DNA of 64,000 bases from Saccharolobus solfataricus P2 (lineage in GTDB: Archaea; Thermoproteota; Thermoprotei_A; Sulfolobales; Sulfolobaceae), in assembly GCF_000007005.1 (NCBI RefSeq), contig NC_002754.1. The stretch is one strand, 5' to 3'. Shown here one piece after another: positions 31,998 to 41,859 of the stretch. Positions within the stretch are counted from its first letter, which is position 1. Each line of letters begins with the position of its first letter. The notes beneath the pieces are model-generated. The model worked only from the letters and a program-made list of their open reading frames with translations. It did no database searches and had not been told where the DNA came from. The position numbers were made by a program, and so were the translations under genes.

Positions 31998-33068
31998 TTA
32001 AGAAAAGGCTAAACTAATTAGAGGCTCTGAAGGGCAATATTTTTCACCCTCCTTAATTATCCATGAGTGTTTTGTTAATTGTGTTAAATAGTTATAAATT
32101 TCTGAGTCAGATATTTCTATTCCCTCTTCCAATTCCAAAGCCCTCTTGACATCACTCCATTTACCGCATTTTGATAAGGTCCTCATTATATTTAAATACC
32201 TCTTTCTAGCGATTTCTCTGCCATGTAGAAAATTCTCAAATTCCTTTAAGATAAGCTTTTTAGCGTACTCCAATGTTTGATTTATTGCAAAATCTAAATT
32301 CTTATTATCTAAATAGATAAAACCAAAGTAGGTTAGCCAACCTGGTATTCCTCCAATTTTCTCATAAACGACTTCGTAATCCTTAAAATCAATATCTGCC
32401 TCTTGAAAACCTCTCCTCAAAAACTCTATAGCTTCTTCTCTAGAAAAGGGCTTTAATTCAACCGTTGAAAAGGCTCTCCCGAAAAGCGGACTTTCTGGAT
32501 CTTCAACTCTTAAGTAATCGTAAAGCAAACCCATCTCTGAACCACTCATAATAAATTTAATTCGCTTTAAATTATCATACGCATAAGCTAGTGCTGGTAA
32601 AAGATTAACTCCTCTTAACTTAACCAGCTCCTGAGCCTCATCAAGGACAATAATCACATTATCCTTTGATGCCTGCTCAAAGCTCTCCAATAAATTCGCA
32701 AAACTTAACCTATCCTTCCTATTCCAATTGAACTTAATTTCATTTCCCATTATCACAATCCCTTGAATGTTTTTTAGCGCCTTCAGTAATGAAGGAAGTC
32801 TTTTTACCAACTTGTTAATCTCCTTTTGAAGTTCAAGTAGGAAATCCTTATAGGAAATGTAATTTCTCTCTTCGAATTTTCTTAGATCCAGATAGATGTA
32901 AGGGAGATTTAACTCATTTATTCCTATCTTTATTATGGATGATTTCCCTGTTCTTCTCAATCCTAAAACTAAGGTTATTGGCGCCCTCAATCCTTTCAAC
33001 TTCTCAATTTCTTTTTCTCTATCAAAGAAATCTTTTCTGTTATCCTTAGGTGAAGTATCGAATAGCAC
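31998..33068 (-). CDS. Archaeal AAA+/STAND-like ATPase with C-terminal winged helix
   Basis: MLFDTSPK...FFDRE, Walker A GLRRTGKS, Walker B VLDEAQ, GGIPGWL. Confidence 0.88.
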   Translation of the reverse strand: MLFDTSPKDNRKDFFDREKEIEKLKGLRAPITLVLGLRRTGKSSIIKIGINELNLPYIYLDLRKFEERNYISYKDFLLELQKEINKLVKRLPSLLKALKNIQGIVIMGNEIKFNWNRKDRLSFANLLESFEQASKDNVIIVLDEAQELVKLRGVNLLPALAYAYDNLKRIKFIMSGSEMGLLYDYLRVEDPESPLFGRAFSTVELKPFSREEAIEFLRRGFQEADIDFKDYEVVYEKIGGIPGWLTYFGFIYLDNKNLDFAINQTLEYAKKLILKEFENFLHGREIARKRYLNIMRTLSKCGKWSDVKRALELEEGIEISDSEIYNYLTQLTKHSWIIKEGEKYCPSEPLISLAFS

Positions 33069-33103
33069 TTCTACCCCCAGAAGTAACTTCTACCCCCAGA
33101 AGT
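33067..33103. repeat. Tandem pair of 18-bp palindromic units ACTTCTACCCCCAGAAGT over the ATPase start codon
   Basis: Exact duplicate at 33067..33084 and 33086..33103; each unit is ACTTCT-N6-AGAAGT. Confidence 0.85.
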
Positions 33104-33292: not shown

Positions 33293-34367
33293 CAGTTGTG
33301 TTTCACCAATTTTACTAGAAATGATGTAATTTCTATGGTAGGGGAAAATATCGAGTTATGGTTGTGAAAATCGGCTTATTTCAACATGATTATCAAAAAA
33401 TTTTTAGATTAAACGAGAAGCATGGTTAAAAAGGAGTTTGTATATAGAGGGTAATATCATCTGTTTAGCATTATCAAGCGGGGAGGGGAGGTCTAGGGAG
33501 GAGGTGAACAGGAAAGGGTTAAAGCGAGGGACTCCATGACTCCGTTATGCAAGTTTATGAAACGGGATTCAAAACGGAGTTGAAGTCCCTCGCTAGTTAT
33601 TTCATCGTCAATAATCTTAACGTTATCTCCCAAGAGTTGGACACGAGGATCGCGGACGCAGCTCCGTTCCTGTTGACAGGGAACAGGGAAAAGGAGTACT
33701 TGAAGGTCGTTAGGGAAGGAGAGAAGGTGATGAGTCAAGGGGAGAGGAGCTTCAAGTTCTACCCTCACGTGAAAGTTGAGGGAAAGACTACAATCGTTGC
33801 AGTGGACGAGACCGCGATAACCGTGGGAGAGAAGGAGTCGAGGAAGGTGGAAGGATTTCAACTCTACAACGGGAAGAGGAAGGGAGTTAAGTTGAGGTCC
33901 GTGGACTTGGTGTTCCCCTTGAGGTTGTCCCTCCTCGAGGAGATAGCTGACTTGAGAAGCGATACTCCCTCCCAGTTCCTGATGAGGGCCGTGAGCGAAG
34001 TTGCTCAGCACCTCAAGATAGACTACGTTGTTGCTGACGCGGGTTTCCTGAACTTGAAGGTAATCAAGGAGATGCCTGTGAAGACCGTGGTAGGAGGTAA
34101 GACCAACCTGAAGGGCTTCAAGGAACTCTCCAACGTCTCTCTAACCGAGAAGAAATGCGAGGTAAATGACAGGGTTTACGTTGCGTATAGGGTCCTGAAG
34201 TACAATGACCTTTACTACTATGAAGTGATATACGTCAAGGAGAAACCCAGGCACTTCATCTTCGTTACCAACTTCAATGGAGATCCCTACAAGCTAGCTG
34301 AGCTCTACAGGTTGAGATGGCAGAGCGAAGAGGGCTTCAAGGTCAGGAAGGCCAGGATAAGATACGT
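33293..34367 (+). mobile_element. Truncated ISC1439-like IS (transposase 33547 to about 34367)
   Basis: Left end CAGTTGTGTTTCACCAA; protein clearly homologous to 54932..55897; cut at KARIRYV by SM1. Confidence 0.85.
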
Positions 34368-34447
34368 TAGTGCTTTCAGAAAGTTTATGGCTTATAGGCA
34401 AAGGATATACCACTAGATCATAGTCTAAGAACTTTTCCAAAATACTA
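34368..34447 (+). mobile_element. SM1-type MITE (80 bp)
   Basis: Identical to 44621..44700; flanks GT and AC do not form a duplication. Confidence 0.9.
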
Positions 34448-35540
34448 ACGAATATAGGTGTGACACAAGGGTAGGGGTAATTGGAATAGACGTATCAAAA
34501 GAACACTTGGTAACAAGTAAGGGGAGGGTGAGGAAATTCACAAACAACGAGAAGGGCTACGAAGAAATACTAACCATGAAGCCAAACATCATCGTAATAG
34601 AACCCACAGGAGTATACTCAACAAGACCTTGCCAATACTTCAAAGAAAGAGGAGTGAAAGTCCTACTAGTCAGCCTTGTTATGGAAAGAAAAGGACGTAA
34701 GGGGAAAGAAAACAGATTTTTACGACGCAGAAAAACTTGAAAACATGGTAAATAAGGCTAGAGAATACGTTAACAACCCCTTAAAAGAATTAGTATCACT
34801 CTACCTCTTCATGAAGGATGTGCAAACGAAACAAGAGAACAGGTTAAGGAGAGCTCTCTTCCTCGTGAGCGACGAGGAGAAGTTGAGCGAGGAGAGATTG
34901 GAGAAGTTCTCTAAGGGAGACTTCTCTGACGTAAAACTGTATCAACTGGAATACACTGGTACAGTACTACGTGAGATTCAAGTCCTAGCGAGAACACTAC
35001 TTCAAACGCGAGAAGAGTTGAAGGAGGTGAGGAAAATGATAGAGGGTAATGTGCCTCAAGACCACGTGTTACTCACGATTCCCGGAATAGGGAAACTGGC
35101 AGCTGGGATTATAATTGGGATTGTGGGTGATATTAAGCGCTTCCCAAGACCTGAATCCTTCGTTGCTTATTGCGGTTTAGACCCGGTAGTTGAGAGGAGT
35201 GGTAGGATTGAGGTTAGAAAGGGTATCTCTAAGAGGGGTAACAAGTATTTGCGTAGCTTGTTTTATTTCCTCGCCGAGACTCAATATTCGCGTAACCCAA
35301 CTCTCCTTAAGTTCTACGAAGCTCACAAGGATAAACTGAAGGGTAGGAAACTGTACACTGCCTTAGCTAGGAAGTTGGCTAGGATAGTGTGGAGTGTTTG
35401 GTATAATAATAAGCCTTATGAGGTGAAGTGACCCTCCCCTAATCGCCACGCGGATTGAAAGAGTCCGCGTGGCAATAGTAGCTGATACTATGCTCAAAAT
35501 TTGACCGAAAGATTTATTACTGAACGCCCTCGCACATAAG
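34448..35540 (+). mobile_element. ISC1190-like IS110-family element, left end missing, recombinase frameshifted
   Basis: GIDVSK and IEPTG, then a frameshift into 34676..35431 (FYDAEKL, IPGIG, SGR...GNKYLR). Right-end hairpin GCCACGCGGA/TCCGCGTGGC at 35445..35473. Right boundary approximate. Confidence 0.8.
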
Positions 35541-35673
35541 CTTTTTCAGAGGCTGTTTTCATGTTCTAATTCATTGGCTGCATCTCGATCGAAACGATTA
35601 ATTGTGGAAATTTCTAGCCTAATTTAATTTTACTATATGATATCGAATAAGATGACTGCATGAGAACACTCCC
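35527..35673. repeat. About 148-bp MITE-like repeat (copy 1 of 2)
   Basis: Closely similar to 43235..43382; internal imperfect TIR GAGGCTGTTTTCATG / CATGAGAACACTCCC. Confidence 0.7.
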
Positions 35674-35794
35674 CAAATGATATTAGAACGTTTTCTAAGT
35701 GTAGTCAGCGATATTTAGCTTAGCGGGTACACTATGGACATACTCAAAGTAAAAAGCTAACATGAAGTAAATTGTCTGAGAGGCTACGCAGTTT

Positions 35795-36979
35795 TTATTG
35801 CTTAAACACATTCTTAAACACCCACAAGGCGAGGACAATATAACCAAGTAAGAGTTCTGAGACGACTATCACAACGTCCTTTTGTCCTACCAATAAATCC
35901 AGAAAAGACAACAAAATATTCCCCAAAGCACCGAAAATACTGCCTAAGGTCGCGAGTAGGCCGTTATAAGACGCAATAATTTCTTTAGGTAACTTCATCT
36001 GGAAAATAGGACTTGCAAATGAGCTGTAAAGGGTCAAGGAAAGCCAATAAAACACTATAAGGATTAAAGAAAACTGAGGCTGGACAAAAGCCAGAGAAAC
36101 CAAAAGTATCGCGGGGATAAGACCCCTGAAAAATATAAAGATATAATATAGATTATTTCTGTATTTTTCTACCTTAATTTTAGTAAAAATTAGAAGTGAA
36201 ATACTACTGTACGCGATTGTCATCGAGTAGTAGATCATGTAGTTGAGGACGAAATAGGACTGTGGAAAAAACACTAGAAAGGTCGGAAATAGACCGCCTA
36301 TAAAGTTTGCGAAAAGTGTATCTATGAGGAAGAACGTTATCGCCCGATCCTTTTTAAACGCTGAAATTGAAAGGGAGAAGAGGAGTTTAGCATTACCAGT
36401 GCCTTTAGGGTATTTAATCTTGAAAATTAAAGGAGTATGTATTAACAACATGAATAAGCCGAGGACTAAAAGCAGTGATCTTAAGCCGATTATGAAAAAG
36501 GTTAGGTACAAGAATACGATCGCCGAAGCCGTTCTTACAATGTTTACAGTAATCCACACCACTCTGTACTCTGATGCAGAATTTACCAAATTCCTTAATA
36601 CCTTTACGTGGTTTGTCCCCTTAAAAGAGTGTATGGTGACAATCACAGTATAAGCTAGGAAAATAAAACCTAGTTCAAAACGGTAAAGGAAATAAAATAG
36701 TAAAAAAGAAGTCCCGCTTAACAGTGAAAGTATTAGATCGTACCTCCTAGTGTTTACTATATAATCTGTTAGGAAACCTGATATACCGCTCAAATGCCCC
36801 AGAACGTAAGAAATGCTGAGTAAAGCTCCTACCAGTAACGGGTTTTTAGTCTGTAAGAAAAGGTAAGCCGGAAATACTGCCGAGATGATTATTACAGGCT
36901 GTAGAAAGTGCTGTAAAAGGTAAAACTTGACGTTAGTATTAGATAGTATTTTACTCGGCTTCGACTCCAACAACTTCAC
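35795..36979 (-). CDS. MFS-type exporter, coupled to the radical SAM gene
   Basis: 394 aa, about 12 hydrophobic segments, GFLTDYIVNTRR in motif-A position; start overlaps the rSAM 3' end. Confidence 0.75.
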   Translation of the reverse strand: MKLLESKPSKILSNTNVKFYLLQHFLQPVIIISAVFPAYLFLQTKNPLLVGALLSISYVLGHLSGISGFLTDYIVNTRRYDLILSLLSGTSFLLFYFLYRFELGFIFLAYTVIVTIHSFKGTNHVKVLRNLVNSASEYRVVWITVNIVRTASAIVFLYLTFFIIGLRSLLLVLGLFMLLIHTPLIFKIKYPKGTGNAKLLFSLSISAFKKDRAITFFLIDTLFANFIGGLFPTFLVFFPQSYFVLNYMIYYSMTIAYSSISLLIFTKIKVEKYRNNLYYIFIFFRGLIPAILLVSLAFVQPQFSLILIVFYWLSLTLYSSFASPIFQMKLPKEIIASYNGLLATLGSIFGALGNILLSFLDLLVGQKDVVIVVSELLLGYIVLALWVFKNVFKQ

Positions 36980-37970
36980 CTAACTCATGTAATCTAGGAC
37001 ACCCCCTACTCAACGGTGAAAGGATATATTTAGCCCATCTGTTGATTTTACTTTCATCAAGTACTATGCTTCCATCTTCTTCTATGTGGCCTACTGACTC
37101 ATCATCTATCATTACAGTTAGAGGACATTTAAATAATTTACCATCATTTCTTATAATTATAGAAAACGGATACAGCGCTTGACATAAATCATCCATCGCT
37201 GGAACACCATCAATTTGAAGTAACGTGTCTTTATCTGGAATATTCAAGCCTAGTTGCGTAGCATACATATATAATTCTTGAATTATTTCCATTCTTTTTT
37301 TAGGTTCTATGACTTTTAGGTTTTTATCGTTGTCCCCACCAGATCTAGTCACGGGGAAAAAAGTAAAGTAATATCTTCTATCTCTGCTAAAGTAATTCGA
37401 CGCTAAGTCTAAGAATTTCTTAATTGAGTCTAAATTATCTGGCATTACGTTTGATCTTATAAACATAAAGAAATTATCAGTTACATTTCTTGTTTGAATA
37501 AGATTTTCGAATATTTTATCAAACGTAGGCTTACCATTTAATAATGGTCTAAGCTTATCATGAGCATCTTTATAACCATCTATTGTCACCTGAAATATCT
37601 TTACACCTTTTTCTAATAAGATCTTGAATTTTACTATATCTAAGAGGTAACCATTAGTTATAATCTCACCAATTATATCCGTTTTATACGTTTTTCCTAT
37701 CGAATTAGTGAAATCCATAATATCTATAATAGTTTTAAAATCTAGTAACGGCTCTCCTCCATACCATCTGATGTGAACTTTTCTGAAAAAGCCAGTTTTA
37801 ATATTATTTTCTAAAAATAATTTTATTCTTTTTGTCATTTCTGATGTAGTTATCATATTTTTAATTTTATAATGGTCATTCTCGTAGCAGTACACACATC
37901 TAAAATTACACCAACTAGATGGAATGATAGTTATCGAAAAAATTTTCTTATCTTGTATTTTTCCTATCAT
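36951..37970 (-). CDS. Radical SAM enzyme with a reduced SPASM/Twitch-type C-terminus (339 aa from ATG 37970)
   Basis: CNFRCVYC, WYGGEPLL, ITNGYLL, QVTIDG; C-terminal CQA...NDGKLFKC and GCP; AGGTGA RBS upstream of ATG 37970. Confidence 0.9.
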   Translation of the reverse strand: MIGKIQDKKIFSITIIPSSWCNFRCVYCYENDHYKIKNMITTSEMTKRIKLFLENNIKTGFFRKVHIRWYGGEPLLDFKTIIDIMDFTNSIGKTYKTDIIGEIITNGYLLDIVKFKILLEKGVKIFQVTIDGYKDAHDKLRPLLNGKPTFDKIFENLIQTRNVTDNFFMFIRSNVMPDNLDSIKKFLDLASNYFSRDRRYYFTFFPVTRSGGDNDKNLKVIEPKKRMEIIQELYMYATQLGLNIPDKDTLLQIDGVPAMDDLCQALYPFSIIIRNDGKLFKCPLTVMIDDESVGHIEEDGSIVLDESKINRWAKYILSPLSRGCPRLHELGEVVGVEAE

Positions 37971-38032
37971 CCCACTCACCTAACTTACATATATGTATTA
38001 TTAGGTTTCGGAATTTCGAAATCTTGTATGTG

Positions 38033-38182
38033 TCAGCATGCACTATATAAATCTGAACCTCCTCCTGGCCCAGCTTCACACACTATTTCATTCGCTGCTC
38101 TTATTTCTGGATGGCGATATATTTCTTCATATATTGGCTCTATTTGTAGTACATTCTCCATAGATTTTATTCTTTTAGCCAT
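38033..38182 (-). CDS. Putative RiPP precursor peptide MAKRIKSMENVLQIEPIYEEIYRHPEIRAANEIVCEAGPGGGSDLYSAC (49 aa; or 42 aa from ATG 38161)
   Basis: Hand-translated; same strand, 62 nt upstream of the rSAM start; charged leader-like N-terminus and Cys/Gly-rich C-terminal core; TTAAATA box 31 nt before the second ATG. Confidence 0.7.
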   Translation of the reverse strand: MAKRIKSMENVLQIEPIYEEIYRHPEIRAANEIVCEAGPGGGSDLYSAC

Positions 38183-38449
38183 CGTTATTTAACTTAGAAT
38201 TCGTCCTTTTTATTTTTTACTATTATAATACCTTATATGTTTTTAGAAATAATAATGATATAAATTTTAAGTATCTTATATAAAGCTGGTTTATGATCTG
38301 ATAAAAATAAAAAAAAGTTTTTATCGTTTCCTATCTACTGTAATCAGGGCTATTCACGGATCCATCGCGATTTCAATTTGTTTCTCTAAATATAGTACTG
38401 CTTCTTAAGTAATACATAAATATTAAAGTATTTAGTAAGATTTTTACTT

Positions 38450-38548
38450 TAAATTTTAGCTAGTTGTCAGATAGTTATAAACTTTAATTGCTTAATTTCT
38501 ATAATATTTCGAAGTGGATTATTTCTGGAAATAGATTTTGGGTCTACC
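38450..38548 (-). mobile_element. Isolated ISH3-family IS end
   Basis: GATTTTGGGTCTACC ends at 38548; inner boundary approximate. Confidence 0.55.
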
Positions 38549-39125
38549 GATATACAACTGATAACGGGATTGAATGTATGAGGAGTACCTAGAGTAAAAT
38601 TCCTCTTTCGTTAGACCTACCCTCTCTAATGTCCTTTAACGAGGCAATTCCCATGGGATTTTTAACTTCCTCAAACACCTTATCGAAATCTATCTCTATG
38701 GATTGGCCTAACTTTTGAAGAATAATGTCCAATTTTTTATTAATCTCTTTCAGTAGTGATGTAATTTCTGAACTATCACTTTTCCCCTTCTCTTCTTCAG
38801 ACTGCTGCGCACTATTGGTGCTATTTCTTTCCTGAATACCTTTATCTAATAGTTGGATACTACTACCATTTGACCTTCTTATAACACTTATTATCCCTTC
38901 TTTTTCTAGCTCATTTAGTAGTTCCTCAGAAGCCCATTTAACTTTAGATCTCGCTATTTTTCCTCCATGATCCCTTAAATACTTAATTAGTTTCTCCTTA
39001 CTATTCACAATATAATAAATATAAATGGAGATTTTTAACTTAATGGGGTTTGCCTTTAGGAGACTAAGATGGCGAAAGTCCATTCTTGGAACTGCTATCT
39101 TCATTACCTTCATTTCAATTAACAC
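38549..39125 (-). pseudogene. Hypothetical winged-helix/coiled-coil protein, frameshifted near the C-terminus and cut by an IS end
   Basis: ORF 38589..39125. After ASLKDIRE an alternative frame continues VGLTKEEFYSRYSSYIQSRYQLYIG straight into the ISH3 terminus. Confidence 0.45.
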
Positions 39126-39132
39126 TACATGG

Positions 39133-39195
39133 AGTTAAGGGGGTGAAAGTCCACTTCCGTGAGAGATGAATAACCCCTTATAGAAACGTTTTTAC
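39133..39195 (+). mobile_element. IS200/IS605-type left-end remnant
   Basis: TTAAGGGGGTGAAAGTCCACTTCCGTGAGAGATGAATAACCCCTTAT; similar remnant at about 50090..50120. Confidence 0.5.
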
Positions 39196-39240
39196 ATAGT
39201 CTTTTTCATATTAGGCACTACATGCTCCGCCTCTAACAAA
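39196..39240 (+). repeat. Left arm of a 45-bp inverted repeat bracketing the IS110 element
   Basis: ATAGTCTTTTTCATATTAGGCACTACATGCTCCGCCTCTAACAAA matches the rc of 41860..41904 at 43 of 45 positions. Confidence 0.85.
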
Positions 39241-39273
39241 GTGACCGTAGCAGATCGGGATTCTCTGCCACCG

Positions 39274-40423
39274 TAGGAGATGCGAAGGGGGACTGGAAGG
39301 GATTATTAAACTTAGTGGGGAGATGCTGGAAAATGGACGTGCTTAGAACACTAAAAAGGAGGATCAGAAAGCTGATCGAAAAGAAGCCCAAGAACCTAAA
39401 CGAAACCAAAGCAAGAGGAATATTACTATACTTGAAATGAAAACTAAAAAATAGCCGAGATACTACAAGTACACTTGAGCACAGTTTACAGATGGATCAA
39501 CCAATTCGAGAAAGAAGGAGAGAAATGCCTATTCTACAAAGAGAGAAAAGGAAGAAACAAGAAGATAGACGAAAAGGAGATAAAAGTAGAAGAACTTCAA
39601 GGTAAAACCATATGGGAAGCAAAGGCTTATATAGAGGAGAAGTTTCACGTTAAATTAAGCTACGTAACAGCTTGGAGAATAGCTAGGAAAAGATTGAAAA
39701 TCCCCTACATATAACAAGAAGAGGCCCTTTAACGCAGATAACATCTTGAGGGATAGACTAAAGGGTGTTATTAAGAAGGGTGTTAAGGTGTTTTTCACGG
39801 ATGAGTCCGGTATTCATCACGATCCTTCCAGGAGATTGGGGTTGTATAATGTTCCCGTTGATTATCCCAGTAGGAAGCTTAATGTTCTCGCTTCTATTCC
39901 CTTGTTTGGCGGTGTTCCTTGTTTCATGTTCACCTATTCCAATGTTAATTCCGAGATCTTTGCTGAGTTTCTTCGCTTGTTTAGGAATTCCGGTCCTATT
40001 GTGTTGATCCTTGATAATGCTAAGTTTCACAAGAATGCTTATGTTTTCTCCGTTGCTTCTCAGCTCGGCATTATCTTGCTTTTCTTGCCTCCGTATTCTC
40101 CGGATTTAAACCCTATTGAGTTTGGAAGGACTTGAAGCGTTGGGTTAATACTTATTATAATCTTGAATACACTCTTGATTCGATGGAGGAGGAGTTCTAT
40201 TATTTGTTTTTGACGCGTGATTATACAAGCTATTGGGTTAATAAGTTTCGCGACGTGCTCGAGAAACTGGAGGAAGAGGTTAGTATGAAACAATTTTTAT
40301 CGATTCTCCTTTATTATTTGTTCTCAAGTTCTATCAAGTTTAATTCATTAACTATTCAGACTTATTCGAGTGTTCTTCTATATTTTGTATTGGGAAATAT
40401 TAATTTCTCCTTCGCATCTCCTA
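39274..40423 (+). mobile_element. IS630-family element (ISC1078-like, 1150 bp), frameshifted transposase, nested in the IS110 left end
   Basis: Perfect TIR TAGGAGATGCGAAGG / CCTTCGCATCTCCTA; CG duplicated on both sides; FFTDESG, LDNAKFH, PPYSPDLNPIE. Confidence 0.85.
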
Positions 40424-40509
40424 CGGGGAATTCACGCAAAACTAGAGAACGAGTAAAACCAAGTATTACAAGAGAAAAACAAATAAGCAAGGAAGGAGAA
40501 AAACAACAT

Positions 40510-40634
40510 AAGCCCAGTCGCAACATGGGGATAAAAACCCCAGCTAATAGGCTGGCTGTGAAGCCCCTAGAACGATCTAACAAGAGGGGACAAAACCCCG
40601 AGTAGGAGTGCGCAAGTAAATTTTTCTAGGGGCT
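40510..40634 (+). ncRNA. Candidate bridge/seek-RNA of the IS110 element (two stem-internal loop-hairpin modules)
   Basis: 11-bp stem AGCCCCTAGAA (40562) / TTCTAGGGGCT (40624) encloses GGGG-ACAAAA-CCCC. The upstream module AGCCCAG.../...CTGGCT encloses GGGG-ATAAAAA-CCCC. Confidence 0.55.
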
Positions 40635-41859
40635 GAAGGTAGTTAATATTATGCGAGAAAAACGTGGTATTATGATAGTAAAGAATATCTCGCATACACG
40701 AGCAATATTCTATCATGGAAAGTGAGATTAAGACAAGGGGTTTCGCAATAGACGTTTCAAGGGACAAGTTGACGGTAGCGAAAGCTGAACTTGTAATAAC
40801 GCAAGAGAAAAGGGAAGTAGAGGTCAACGAGGTGAGGGAATTCAAGTACGACAACGAGGGAATAGAAGAACTAATCAAATTCCTTGGCGAATATAAGGAA
40901 GGGATAATGGAGTCAACCGGACCGTACTTCTTCTACCTACACGAAGAACTAACAGAAAAGGGATATAAGGTAACATTAATAAATCCCTTACACTTGAAGG
41001 AAGTATTCGGAAAGAAGACCGACAAGCTAGACGCGCAAAGACTGGCAAAAGCCTTCATCCTGGGAGCAGTTAAGGGGTCATACATACCGACCGGGGAAAT
41101 AAGGGAATTGAGGGAGTTAACGAGGTATAGGGAGAGTTTGATGAGGAAGATAACACAAGTAAAGAACGAGATAAGGAAGTTTCTAGAAATGGCGGGATAC
41201 AAGATAGAGCCCTTTGATAAGAGGGGAATAGCGTTGCTGGAGAAGTTAAGTAGGGGAGAAGGGCTGAGCAAGGAGGAAAGGGACGAGTTGAAGGAGAAGT
41301 TAGGGAGAAGTTTGAATGATGCTGAGAAGCTAGCTTTGAAGCAGCTGGTAGACTTACTGAAGAGCTTGGAGGCTATGGTTAAGGAAGTTGAGGACATGAT
41401 AATTTCTAAGATTCCTCAGCCTGTGGTCGAGTTGAGCCGGGAGTTGGTTTGATCAGTGCTGCAACCATTTACGCTGAGTTCGGTGATGTTTCTCGTTTTT
41501 CCAGTTCTAAGGCTGCAAGGGCTTATGCTGGTTTTGCTCCCAGGACTAAGCAGAGTGGTGAGAGCGAGTCTCACTCTGGTATGGGTAATAAGTATTTGCG
41601 TAGGGCTTTTTTCTTGGTTGCTAGGGTTGCTAGGAAGTCTGAACGTTTTAAGGAGTATTACGATAGGCTTGTCTCCAAGTGGAAGAGTGCTACTAAACTT
41701 GTGCTCTTGGTGGGAAGCTTGCTTGTATTTGTTATCACGTTATAAAGGATGGTGTTTACAAGGGCGATGTTAAGAAGAGTTTTAGGGCACCTAGGGGGAA
41801 GGACGTTAACGTTCAAGATGTTGATGTGGGTGATGTGCTGGACTCGTTGTCCCAGTAGG

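Follow-up and report, generated by a model that had tools for sequence, protein, structure and literature searches.

A putative three-gene radical SAM peptide-modification cassette, horizontally mobile and mostly decaying, in the Sulfolobales

Introduction

A 64,000-nucleotide (nt) stretch of the Saccharolobus solfataricus P2 genome (NC_002754.1; hereafter 'the window') carries on its minus strand, at positions 35795-38182, a 49-codon open reading frame (ORF), a gene for a radical S-adenosylmethionine (SAM) enzyme (rSAM) and a gene for a polytopic membrane protein. A first-pass annotation read these as a horizontally acquired cassette for an exported, thioether-containing ribosomally synthesised, post-translationally modified peptide (RiPP). 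The features from which it argued, namely the 49-amino-acid (aa) ORF, its 62-nt spacing from the rSAM gene, the overlap of the rSAM and membrane genes, the AT-richness, the flanking insertion sequence (IS) DNA and the absence of a protease, are all present. The question raised by the locus is whether the small ORF is a genuine precursor gene and, if so, what its two neighbours do with or for its product.

Clusters for rSAM-modified RiPPs are widely predicted in archaea, in a survey where the Sulfolobales go unmentioned (PMC12144867), and our literature search found no description of this cassette or of an rSAM-modified peptide from that group. From the comparisons presented here we consider it probable that the locus is a Sulfolobales-specific, horizontally mobile three-gene rSAM RiPP operon, comprising a precursor, a thioether maturase and a membrane protein for export or immunity.

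A conserved peptide gene ahead of the rSAM gene

The small ORF (38033-38182, minus strand; 49 codons followed by TGA) translates as MAKRIKSMENVLQIEPIYEEIYRHPEIRAANEIVCEAGPGGGSDLYSAC and can be divided into a leader of approximately residues 1-34 and a core which begins at Cys35 and continues through a Gly-rich stretch and Asp44 to Cys49. Exhaustive HMMER searching of 1.84 billion representative proteins returned a single match, a 60-aa ORF of Stygiolobus caldivivus KN1 (P0087) with 73% identity. Examination of related loci revealed homologues directly 5' of the rSAM gene, or of its remains, in S. caldivivus KN1, in Sulfolobus sp. S-194 (where the peptide stands before an rSAM gene in fragments and a membrane gene that is split), in Acidianus brierleyi (a 71-aa ORF, 6 nt 5' of the rSAM gene) and in the metagenomic Acidianus-like contig L037 (a 72-aa ORF ahead of an rSAM pseudogene). 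The first-pass annotation had named lack of the peptide, or of its conservation, beside homologous rSAM genes as a refutation of its reading; in these four other lineages the peptide is present and conserved. Within the species, the 49-aa gene is annotated, in an unchanged cassette, in other S. solfataricus assemblies.

The Acidianus peptide is collinear with the others through an N-terminal M-x-x-K/R-x-K-S/Y-I/M-D/E, then V/P-C, a Gly-rich run, and S-S/A-C with W/L-x-I...P-K behind it. Smith-Waterman alignment of the A. brierleyi peptide gave z-scores of 7.4 against S-194 and 6.3 against the window, with none of 2000 shuffled sequences reaching the observed score.

The pattern of substitution is that of a protein-coding gene. 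In leader codons 1-35, the window and KN1 are separated by eight synonymous and seven non-synonymous changes, corresponding to a ratio of non-synonymous to synonymous substitution rates (dN/dS) of 0.16 (Fisher p=0.002), a value that matches the 0.18 of the membrane gene in the same comparison, while the core has a dN/dS of around 1.3. Among the five remaining frames, significance is limited to one antisense frame, at p=0.04. The window and S-194 peptides compare similarly, with proportions of synonymous and non-synonymous differences (pS and pN) of 0.51 and 0.14, respectively (p=0.0002). A leader under purifying selection and a variable core, encoded beside an enzyme, constitute the pattern of a RiPP precursor, and we conclude from these comparisons that the peptide ORF is a true gene with a link to the rSAM gene.

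The alternative leaderless start at ATG 38161 that had been suggested earlier is unlikely. Residues 1-7 show conservation in KN1, A. brierleyi and L037, and the Met8 encoded at that position is replaced by Ile in the Acidianus homologues. The ORF in S-194 does begin at Met8, owing to a 1-nt insertion in what is a decayed locus; the insertion is found right behind the first ATG, and remnants of IS110-family elements lie immediately upstream. A terminator-like hairpin at 38053-38073 was disregarded, falling as it does within the Gly-rich coding stretch. We also observed that the 19 nt of the peptide start (38164-38182, ATGGCTAAAAGAATAAAAT, encoding MAKRIK) match at 17 of 19 positions a segment internal to the rSAM gene (37820-37838, ATGACAAAAAGAATAAAAT, encoding MTKRIK); having no parallel in A. 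brierleyi, this near-repeat is probably due to chance.

No peptide was detectable by tblastn and blastn in four loci containing rSAM pseudogenes (L001, L008, L009 and L011). There, homology to the window ends 38 nt 5' of the rSAM start, and we do not count the missing peptide against the gene because the 5' region has been replaced. In L001 (5700-5930), and also in L008, L009 and L025, a GC-rich element of around 230 nt stands in place of the peptide gene and promoter. Its core matches the Rfam family Sso133 (Sulfolobus sRNA133) with 41 bits and E=2.8e-6, just below the gathering score, and no such element is present in the window.

Shortening of the precursor by a stop codon

The TGA that ends the window ORF aligns with a Trp codon in S-194 and A. 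brierleyi and with a Ser codon in KN1, and in these three the frame runs on for a further 10-22 codons. Behind the TGA, and still in frame, the window contains 15 codons, HIQDFEIPKPNNTYM, followed by TAA (37985-38032, minus strand); this TAA sits 14 nt 5' of the rSAM ATG, and the spacing in A. brierleyi is similarly tight. The 12 tail codons shared with S-194 contain four synonymous differences and one non-synonymous difference (Fisher p=0.0012, with other frames not significant), and a motif within the tail recurs in the distant Acidianus peptides (SSCWSIPYPKYPKKR versus SSCWHIQDFKIPKPNN). Since this coding-type substitution pattern persists, we conclude that the tail was translated until recently.

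The C-terminal Cys and the 62-nt spacer to which the first-pass annotation drew attention (53 nt if measured to the GTG at 37979 rather than the ATG at 37970) are therefore present as described, but judging from the alignments both are secondary, created inside a formerly longer precursor by a stop that the relatives lack. The leader and both of the Cys residues conserved family-wide lie 5' of the stop. With the precursor ending at codon 50 and a tail of around 15 residues lost, the present-day activity of the S. solfataricus cassette is uncertain. In S-194 (L024, 2558-2620) the precursor tail contains an insertion of around 59 nt with a perfect hairpin, CTGTCCGTTACGGACAG.

A Twitch-like putative maturase lacking an RRE

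The rSAM gene (36951-37970, minus strand) encodes 339 aa from the ATG at 37970; the program-made ORF begins at the GTG at 37979 and has 342 aa, and its numbering is used here. The protein matches the Pfam family Radical_SAM (PF04055) with E=1.2e-16 and 61.8 bits, compared to a gathering cutoff of 29.5. The CX3CX2C motif for the SAM-binding [4Fe-4S] cluster (C24, C28 and C31; 37887-37910) reads CNFRCVYC and is intact and canonical. The enzyme had earlier been described as atypical, a description that does not hold for this motif and applies solely to two losses: of the N-terminal RiPP recognition element (RRE) and of the second auxiliary cluster.

The first of these losses is evident from alignment with full-length relatives, in which the N-terminal RRE region of around 90 residues has no counterpart in the window enzyme. 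N-terminal to the first cluster Cys there are only about 20 residues, and NCBIfam models are matched only from around model position 78 onward, so that this enzyme, having no N-terminal RRE, does not qualify as RRE-dependent. The second concerns the C-terminal region (36999-37184, minus strand). Three SPASM Cys residues are left, C266 and C285, in the arrangement C266-X13-G-X4-C285, followed by C327, and these align with the first, second and last-of-CX2CX5CX3C cysteines of relatives having a full SPASM domain. The other four SPASM Cys, comprising all of the second-auxiliary-cluster ligands, are absent, and the seven-Cys SPASM pattern (CX9-15GX4C...CX2CX5CX3C...C) is thus incomplete. A SPASM domain shortened so as to hold a single cluster is by definition a Twitch domain (PMC6231123). 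Its fold is a β-hairpin plus helix, to which both the sequence pattern and the secondary structure of an AlphaFold2 (AF2) model (strands 273-283, helix 309-320) correspond. In CteB, the three corresponding cysteines, C344, C362 and C413, ligate auxiliary cluster 1 and leave an open coordination site, while auxiliary cluster 2 is held by the four cysteines that are missing here (PMC10177961). On its sequence, then, the enzyme is Twitch-like rather than SPASM, and RRE-less.

Its affinities are consistent across methods. Among the best 25 of 67 NCBIfam families, the top matches are maturases of Cys-containing peptides: TIGR04463, CefB, FlmE/OhkG, the geopeptide maturase, Clo7bot, PapB and SCIFF. 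It is a member of none of these listed equivalogs. A profile built from the enzyme and its relatives matched CteB (PDB code 5WGG) at 4.7e-43, followed by the anaerobic sulfatase-maturating enzyme (anSME), TigE and SkfB. The AF2 model has a mean predicted local distance difference test score (pLDDT) of 80 and a predicted template modelling score of 0.83, and Foldseek again placed CteB first and anSME next. These comparisons establish the domain make-up of the enzyme and its position within the thioether-forming CteB/PapB/TIGR04463 clade, and they bear out the earlier proposal of a thioether link to the extent that the nearest families are Cys-peptide thioether maturases.

The short form is not peculiar to the window. 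The closest database relatives, P0001 and P0004 (331-334 aa, 33-35% identity), are likewise RRE-less and Twitch-like, have lost the same four SPASM Cys, and are encoded immediately downstream of small ORFs whose C-termini are Cys-rich: at least three in tandem on contig L005, five called as genes ahead of the enzyme gene on a second contig, and one in the case of P0004. Since P0001 and P0004 share both losses and sit beside Cys-rich small ORFs, we regard the short form as a functional-looking subfamily and not a fragment.

A membrane protein of uncertain family

The 394-aa membrane protein is encoded at 35795-36979 (minus strand), its start overlapping the rSAM stop (36951) by 29 nt, and this stop/start overlap is kept in all lineages. 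Its family is small, forming eight clusters at 90% identity, all from Sulfolobales. No Pfam or NCBIfam family was matched at E<0.1, and a profile search of the PDB returned nothing even at E=10.

The first-pass annotation called the protein an exporter of the major facilitator superfamily (MFS). That assignment survives as a suggestion from the fold, and in sequence finds no significant match in Pfam, NCBIfam or the PDB. The AF2 model, though poor (pLDDT 46), contains 12 long helices arranged 6+6 around a central loop; the 50 best Foldseek matches listed are all MFS proteins, with TM-scores of 0.24-0.36 that relate to this low-confidence model. Pfam MFS_1 appears at E=3.7 for the window protein and recurs in three of the eight family members at lax thresholds (best E 0.065), compared to a single member matching one other Pfam family at E=0.25. 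An invariant stretch behind helix 2, GFLTDY..NTR.YD (G-x-L-x-D...R-R), is one that we take to resemble MFS motif A, and two family members bear the UniRef label 'MFS transporter'. Alignment by hhalign to three bona fide MFS proteins gave a probability of 0.1%. Our reading of the protein as a divergent transporter of MFS fold is probable but unproven.

Decay of the enzyme, persistence of the membrane gene

The membrane gene is intact at nearly every locus, while the rSAM gene is damaged in various ways. Frameshifts and replacement of the third cluster Cys by Phe are found in Stygiolobus sp. CP850M and in metagenomes L008, L009 and L025; a 5' deletion, with a toxin-antitoxin pair upstream, in L011; and early stops in S-194 and L037. 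In the A. hospitalis-type loci L003, L013 and L036 only the last 48-79 codons are left. KN1 has lost nearly all of the gene except the last 50 nt or so: around 1 kb equivalent to window positions 38006-37001 is missing, and the peptide gene abuts an intact membrane gene. In A. brierleyi (CP029289.2; L022, 3012-4001) the ORF is otherwise open, with 329 codons and 54% identity to the window, but the cluster motif reads CNFRCIYR, the third Cys having been replaced by Arg (codon CGT). This essential Cys has thus been lost in two independent lineages. Finally, L023 has the membrane gene beside ABC-transporter genes with no trace of an rSAM gene. By our reading of these lesions, at least six independent inactivations of the rSAM gene have occurred outside the window genome, and the window is the only examined locus with an unbroken rSAM gene retaining all cluster ligands. 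A consequence that had not been foreseen is that the membrane gene has a value of its own, since it outlives the enzyme in most genomes.

Two sets of S. solfataricus assemblies or reads (L027 and L030) contain rSAM and 49-aa genes identical to those of the window and a membrane gene called in pieces, of 104 aa in one case and of 187 and 218 aa in the other. In some S. solfataricus strains or cultures it is thus the membrane gene that has been lost instead.

It is clear from these comparisons that all three genes are genuine, that they are linked in five lineages and that selection acts on them. Horizontal acquisition, as had been proposed, is also supported. The window and Stygiolobus sp. CP850M share 96.9% DNA identity over the membrane gene and 94.6% over the rSAM pseudogene, and the flanking genes differ between all genomes carrying the cassette. 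DNA identity at the 97% level across genera, combined with differing contexts, indicates recent horizontal transfer.

Comparison with known systems

By structure and by profile the best matches are the ranthipeptide and six-cysteines-in-forty-five (SCIFF) maturases CteB, Tte1186 and PapB. They share with the cassette enzyme the rSAM core, the CX13GX4C β-hairpin and three Cys at the positions which in CteB ligate the open-site auxiliary cluster 1, and they act on a small precursor encoded nearby with Cys in a C-terminal core. Unlike them, the cassette enzyme lacks the RRE and the four auxiliary-cluster-2 ligands and is only 17-19% identical by structural alignment; the cassette precursors have 2-5 Cys rather than CX3D or six-Cys patterns, and the host is archaeal and aerobic. 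CrpC of Methanococcus voltae, a member of TIGR04463, installs ranthionines; among archaeal ranthionine enzymes this one, from a methanogen, was characterised first (PMC13692751). Its family is the best NCBIfam match (3.7e-42), and it is comparable in being archaeal and in having a Cys-rich substrate with a conserved, leader-like N-terminal region, but CrpC possesses three clusters, an RRE and a complete SPASM domain and acts on large repeat proteins, and the cassette enzyme scores 145 bits against a cutoff of 525. The Twitch sactisynthase SkfB (PDB code 6EFN) matures peptides by thioether formation and has a single auxiliary cluster on three visible Cys ligands, as proposed for the cassette enzyme; it differs in having an RRE, CX33CXC ligands and a [2Fe-2S] cluster, and is a more distant profile match (1.5e-12).

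Among uncharacterised proteins, the metagenomic P0001 and P0004 are most similar in size, in domain losses and in the three C-terminal Cys, and their small ORFs end in NCSTCATNVYCPPKA or KTCGGHCGDSNCG. These precursors are unrelated in sequence to those of the cassette, the hosts are not Sulfolobales, and no membrane gene was seen, a statement that applies to the downstream side of L004 only, L005 ending 60 bp past the rSAM gene. As for the membrane protein, the MFS efflux pumps of bacteriocin and RiPP clusters likewise have around 12 helices, in two six-helix bundles and with a loop in the centre; the cassette protein is set apart from them by its MFS_1 E-value of 3.7, the lack of a PDB sequence match, the negative hhalign result and the pLDDT of 46.

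Proposed function and its alternatives

In the reading that we prefer, the ribosomally made precursor, with its conserved leader of around 34 residues and a variable core containing at least two conserved Cys around a Gly-rich stretch, would be the substrate of the rSAM enzyme, which would bind this adjacent-encoded peptide without the help of an RRE domain. Leader recognition independent of an RRE has a precedent in DarE (PMC10705402). The SAM cluster would generate a 5'-deoxyadenosyl radical, which would abstract a hydrogen atom from one of the residues of the core. The single auxiliary cluster, with three Cys ligands and an open iron as in auxiliary cluster 1 of CteB, PapB and Tte1186, would hold a precursor Cys thiolate and accept the second electron, yielding one or two intramolecular thioether rings of the sactionine or ranthionine type. 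Finally, the translationally coupled 12-helix membrane protein would export the product and/or protect the cell. The chemistry is proposed by analogy with the nearest characterised relatives, CteB, PapB and Tte1186 (PMC10177961) and CrpC (PMC13692751). The antimicrobial role and the Cys-to-Asp/Ser/Ala links put forward in the first-pass annotation are conjectural. Conserved core Cys residues, a precondition for the sactipeptide/ranthipeptide class, are present, and in the window genome the enzyme and membrane genes are intact.

Several observations weigh against this reading. The enzyme scores far under the curated NCBIfam cutoffs (TIGR04463, 145 bits against 525; CefB, 119 against 600; PapB, 94.5 against 340; SCIFF, 74 against 425), so that the chemistry cannot be confidently transferred. 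The precursors have no acceptor residue that all of them conserve: S-194 lacks Asp44, and Thr occurs in the Acidianus cores but not in that of the window. RRE and protease are both absent, and the window precursor is without its conserved tail. The membrane protein has no significant match to the MFS or any other family, and it need not serve the peptide at all because it is retained where the enzyme is dead. None of the examined loci has all three genes in an apparently ancestral state.

The chief alternative, partly compatible with the above, is that the S. solfataricus cassette is a dying relic whose product was abolished by the precursor stop, the rSAM gene being intact merely for lack of time and only the membrane gene being useful. 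We regard this as possible, though clearly less probable than the proposed RiPP operon. The TGA does occupy the position of Trp in S-194 and A. brierleyi with a tail whose pattern is still of coding type, the rSAM gene has been independently inactivated in every other lineage examined, and the membrane gene is split in some S. solfataricus assemblies (L027, L030), all as a relic would have it. Yet the rSAM ORF of 339 codons is without lesion and keeps all its motifs, both family-wide conserved Cys are encoded 5' of the stop, and recognition in rSAM RiPP systems is generally leader-based, the leader being intact here. Purifying selection on the membrane gene (dN/dS 0.18) after rSAM loss, its position in L023 adjoining ABC-transporter genes without an rSAM gene, and the lack of a protease or dedicated peptidase-exporter would also suit a rather unlikely scheme in which the peptide yields not a secreted antimicrobial but a cell-associated factor (a redox or metal-binding cofactor or a signal, compare pyrroloquinoline quinone and mycofactocin, whose precursors are the work of SPASM/Twitch enzymes) and the membrane protein has an unrelated substrate and shares no more than the operon. 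The conserved Tyr and Cys near the peptide C-terminus recall cofactor precursors, a resemblance that is no more than a lead. Against such a factor, the nearest families in both sequence and fold are thioether maturases and not PqqE or MftC, the cassette is accessory, mobile and often lost, unlike a cofactor pathway, and all lineages keep the rSAM and membrane genes in tight stop/start overlap.

More improbable still is that the rSAM enzyme acts on a non-peptide or a distantly encoded protein, leaving the small ORF unrelated or a regulatory leader peptide. An enzyme without an RRE, lying under the cutoffs of all the listed NCBIfam families, might be so interpreted, but the small ORF accompanies the rSAM gene in five lineages with a leader/core selection pattern, and the short RRE-less homologues are likewise found beside Cys-rich small ORFs. 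For the notion that the 49-codon ORF stands open by chance, in intergenic DNA rich in A and T, there is its small size alone; its position and sequence are conserved and the synonymous excess is that of its own frame (leader p=0.002, against one antisense frame at p=0.04), and we count it as already refuted by the comparative data. A bolder elaboration sets at least six rSAM knock-outs against a membrane gene that is under selection and moving across genera (97% DNA identity), and sees in this an arms race over a thioether 'archaeocin'. The membrane protein would be a stand-alone immunity or efflux determinant, most Sulfolobales would be immune non-producers, and S. solfataricus would be the last with a working maturase, a natural minimal thioether synthase able to dispense with both an RRE and a second auxiliary cluster; we think this doubtful.

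Operon structure and genomic surroundings

The cassette as a homologous unit extends beyond its genes. Upstream, homology with KN1 (75.5% identity) and S-194 begins at 38338, and the conserved region 38183-38338 (minus strand) is a putative promoter; an A/T-rich box at 38207-38218, approximately -25 to -36 from the peptide ATG, could be the TATA box of a leaderless or short-leader transcript. A Shine-Dalgarno-like GGTGAG (37975-37980, minus strand), read from the sequence, lies 4 nt 5' of the rSAM ATG, and in A. brierleyi GGTGA precedes the rSAM ATG and overlaps the precursor stop. Since this internal gene is led by a Shine-Dalgarno sequence, the genes probably form an operon. Downstream, homology with KN1 reaches 35680, and thus the 3' flank 35680-35794 (minus strand) is still within the transferred unit. 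No protease gene is found in the cassette, and an Rfam scan of 35400-39300 detected no known RNA family.

The GC content rises from 27-33% in the peptide and rSAM genes to 36-38% in the membrane gene and 42-51% in the IS DNA on either side. Downstream remnants (33547-35431, plus strand; Pfam DDE_Tnp_1 and Transposase_20) include a DDE transposase (33547-34416) and the C-terminal part of an IS110-family transposase (34676-35431), a further IS110-family piece being found at 40715-41452. The latter falls within a nest of IS elements upstream of the cassette (39184-41916), bounded by 57-nt inverted repeats that are 89% complementary and containing an IS630-like unit with perfect 18-nt inverted repeats (39271-39288 and 40409-40426). 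A 178-aa ORF (38589-39125, minus strand), 400 nt 5' of the peptide gene, was considered as a discrete RRE or regulator and rejected, having only weak winged-helix matches; no homologues were found in related loci, and S. solfataricus assemblies (L026, L028) are the only ones in which it was seen ahead of the cassette.

Elsewhere in the window, at 48210-50080 (plus strand), a second rSAM gene encodes a protein of 394 aa with 25% identity to the cassette enzyme, around 85 residues before the cluster motif and a complete SPASM Cys set (CRECPFLPLCMGGC...C), and overlaps a gene for a protein of metallo-β-lactamase fold; this is probably 'system 1' of the first-pass annotation. A dihydrolipoyl dehydrogenase encoded near the cassette shares a 90% cluster with the S. 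solfataricus protein of PDB code 3L8K. A palindromic 18-mer, ACTTCTACCCCCAGAAGT, is present at 33067-33103 in two tandem copies separated by 1 nt, at the start of a gene (31998-33068) for an archaeal ATPase with an MCM-C winged helix-turn-helix.

Significance

What is new here is a minimal, Twitch-type, RRE-less maturase of the thioether clade which has its own precursor and membrane protein families and which is confined to the Sulfolobales, mobile and mostly decaying. The cassette resides in a genetically tractable model archaeon, and nature has supplied a series of knock-outs in which the enzyme is deleted, a cluster Cys mutated, the precursor truncated or the membrane gene left alone. If the enzyme is active, thioether installation would be possible with one auxiliary cluster and without an RRE, which would bear on the debated role of auxiliary clusters and provide a small, thermostable catalyst. 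Through its pattern of retention, the membrane gene allows producer-versus-immunity dynamics to be tested directly in archaea.

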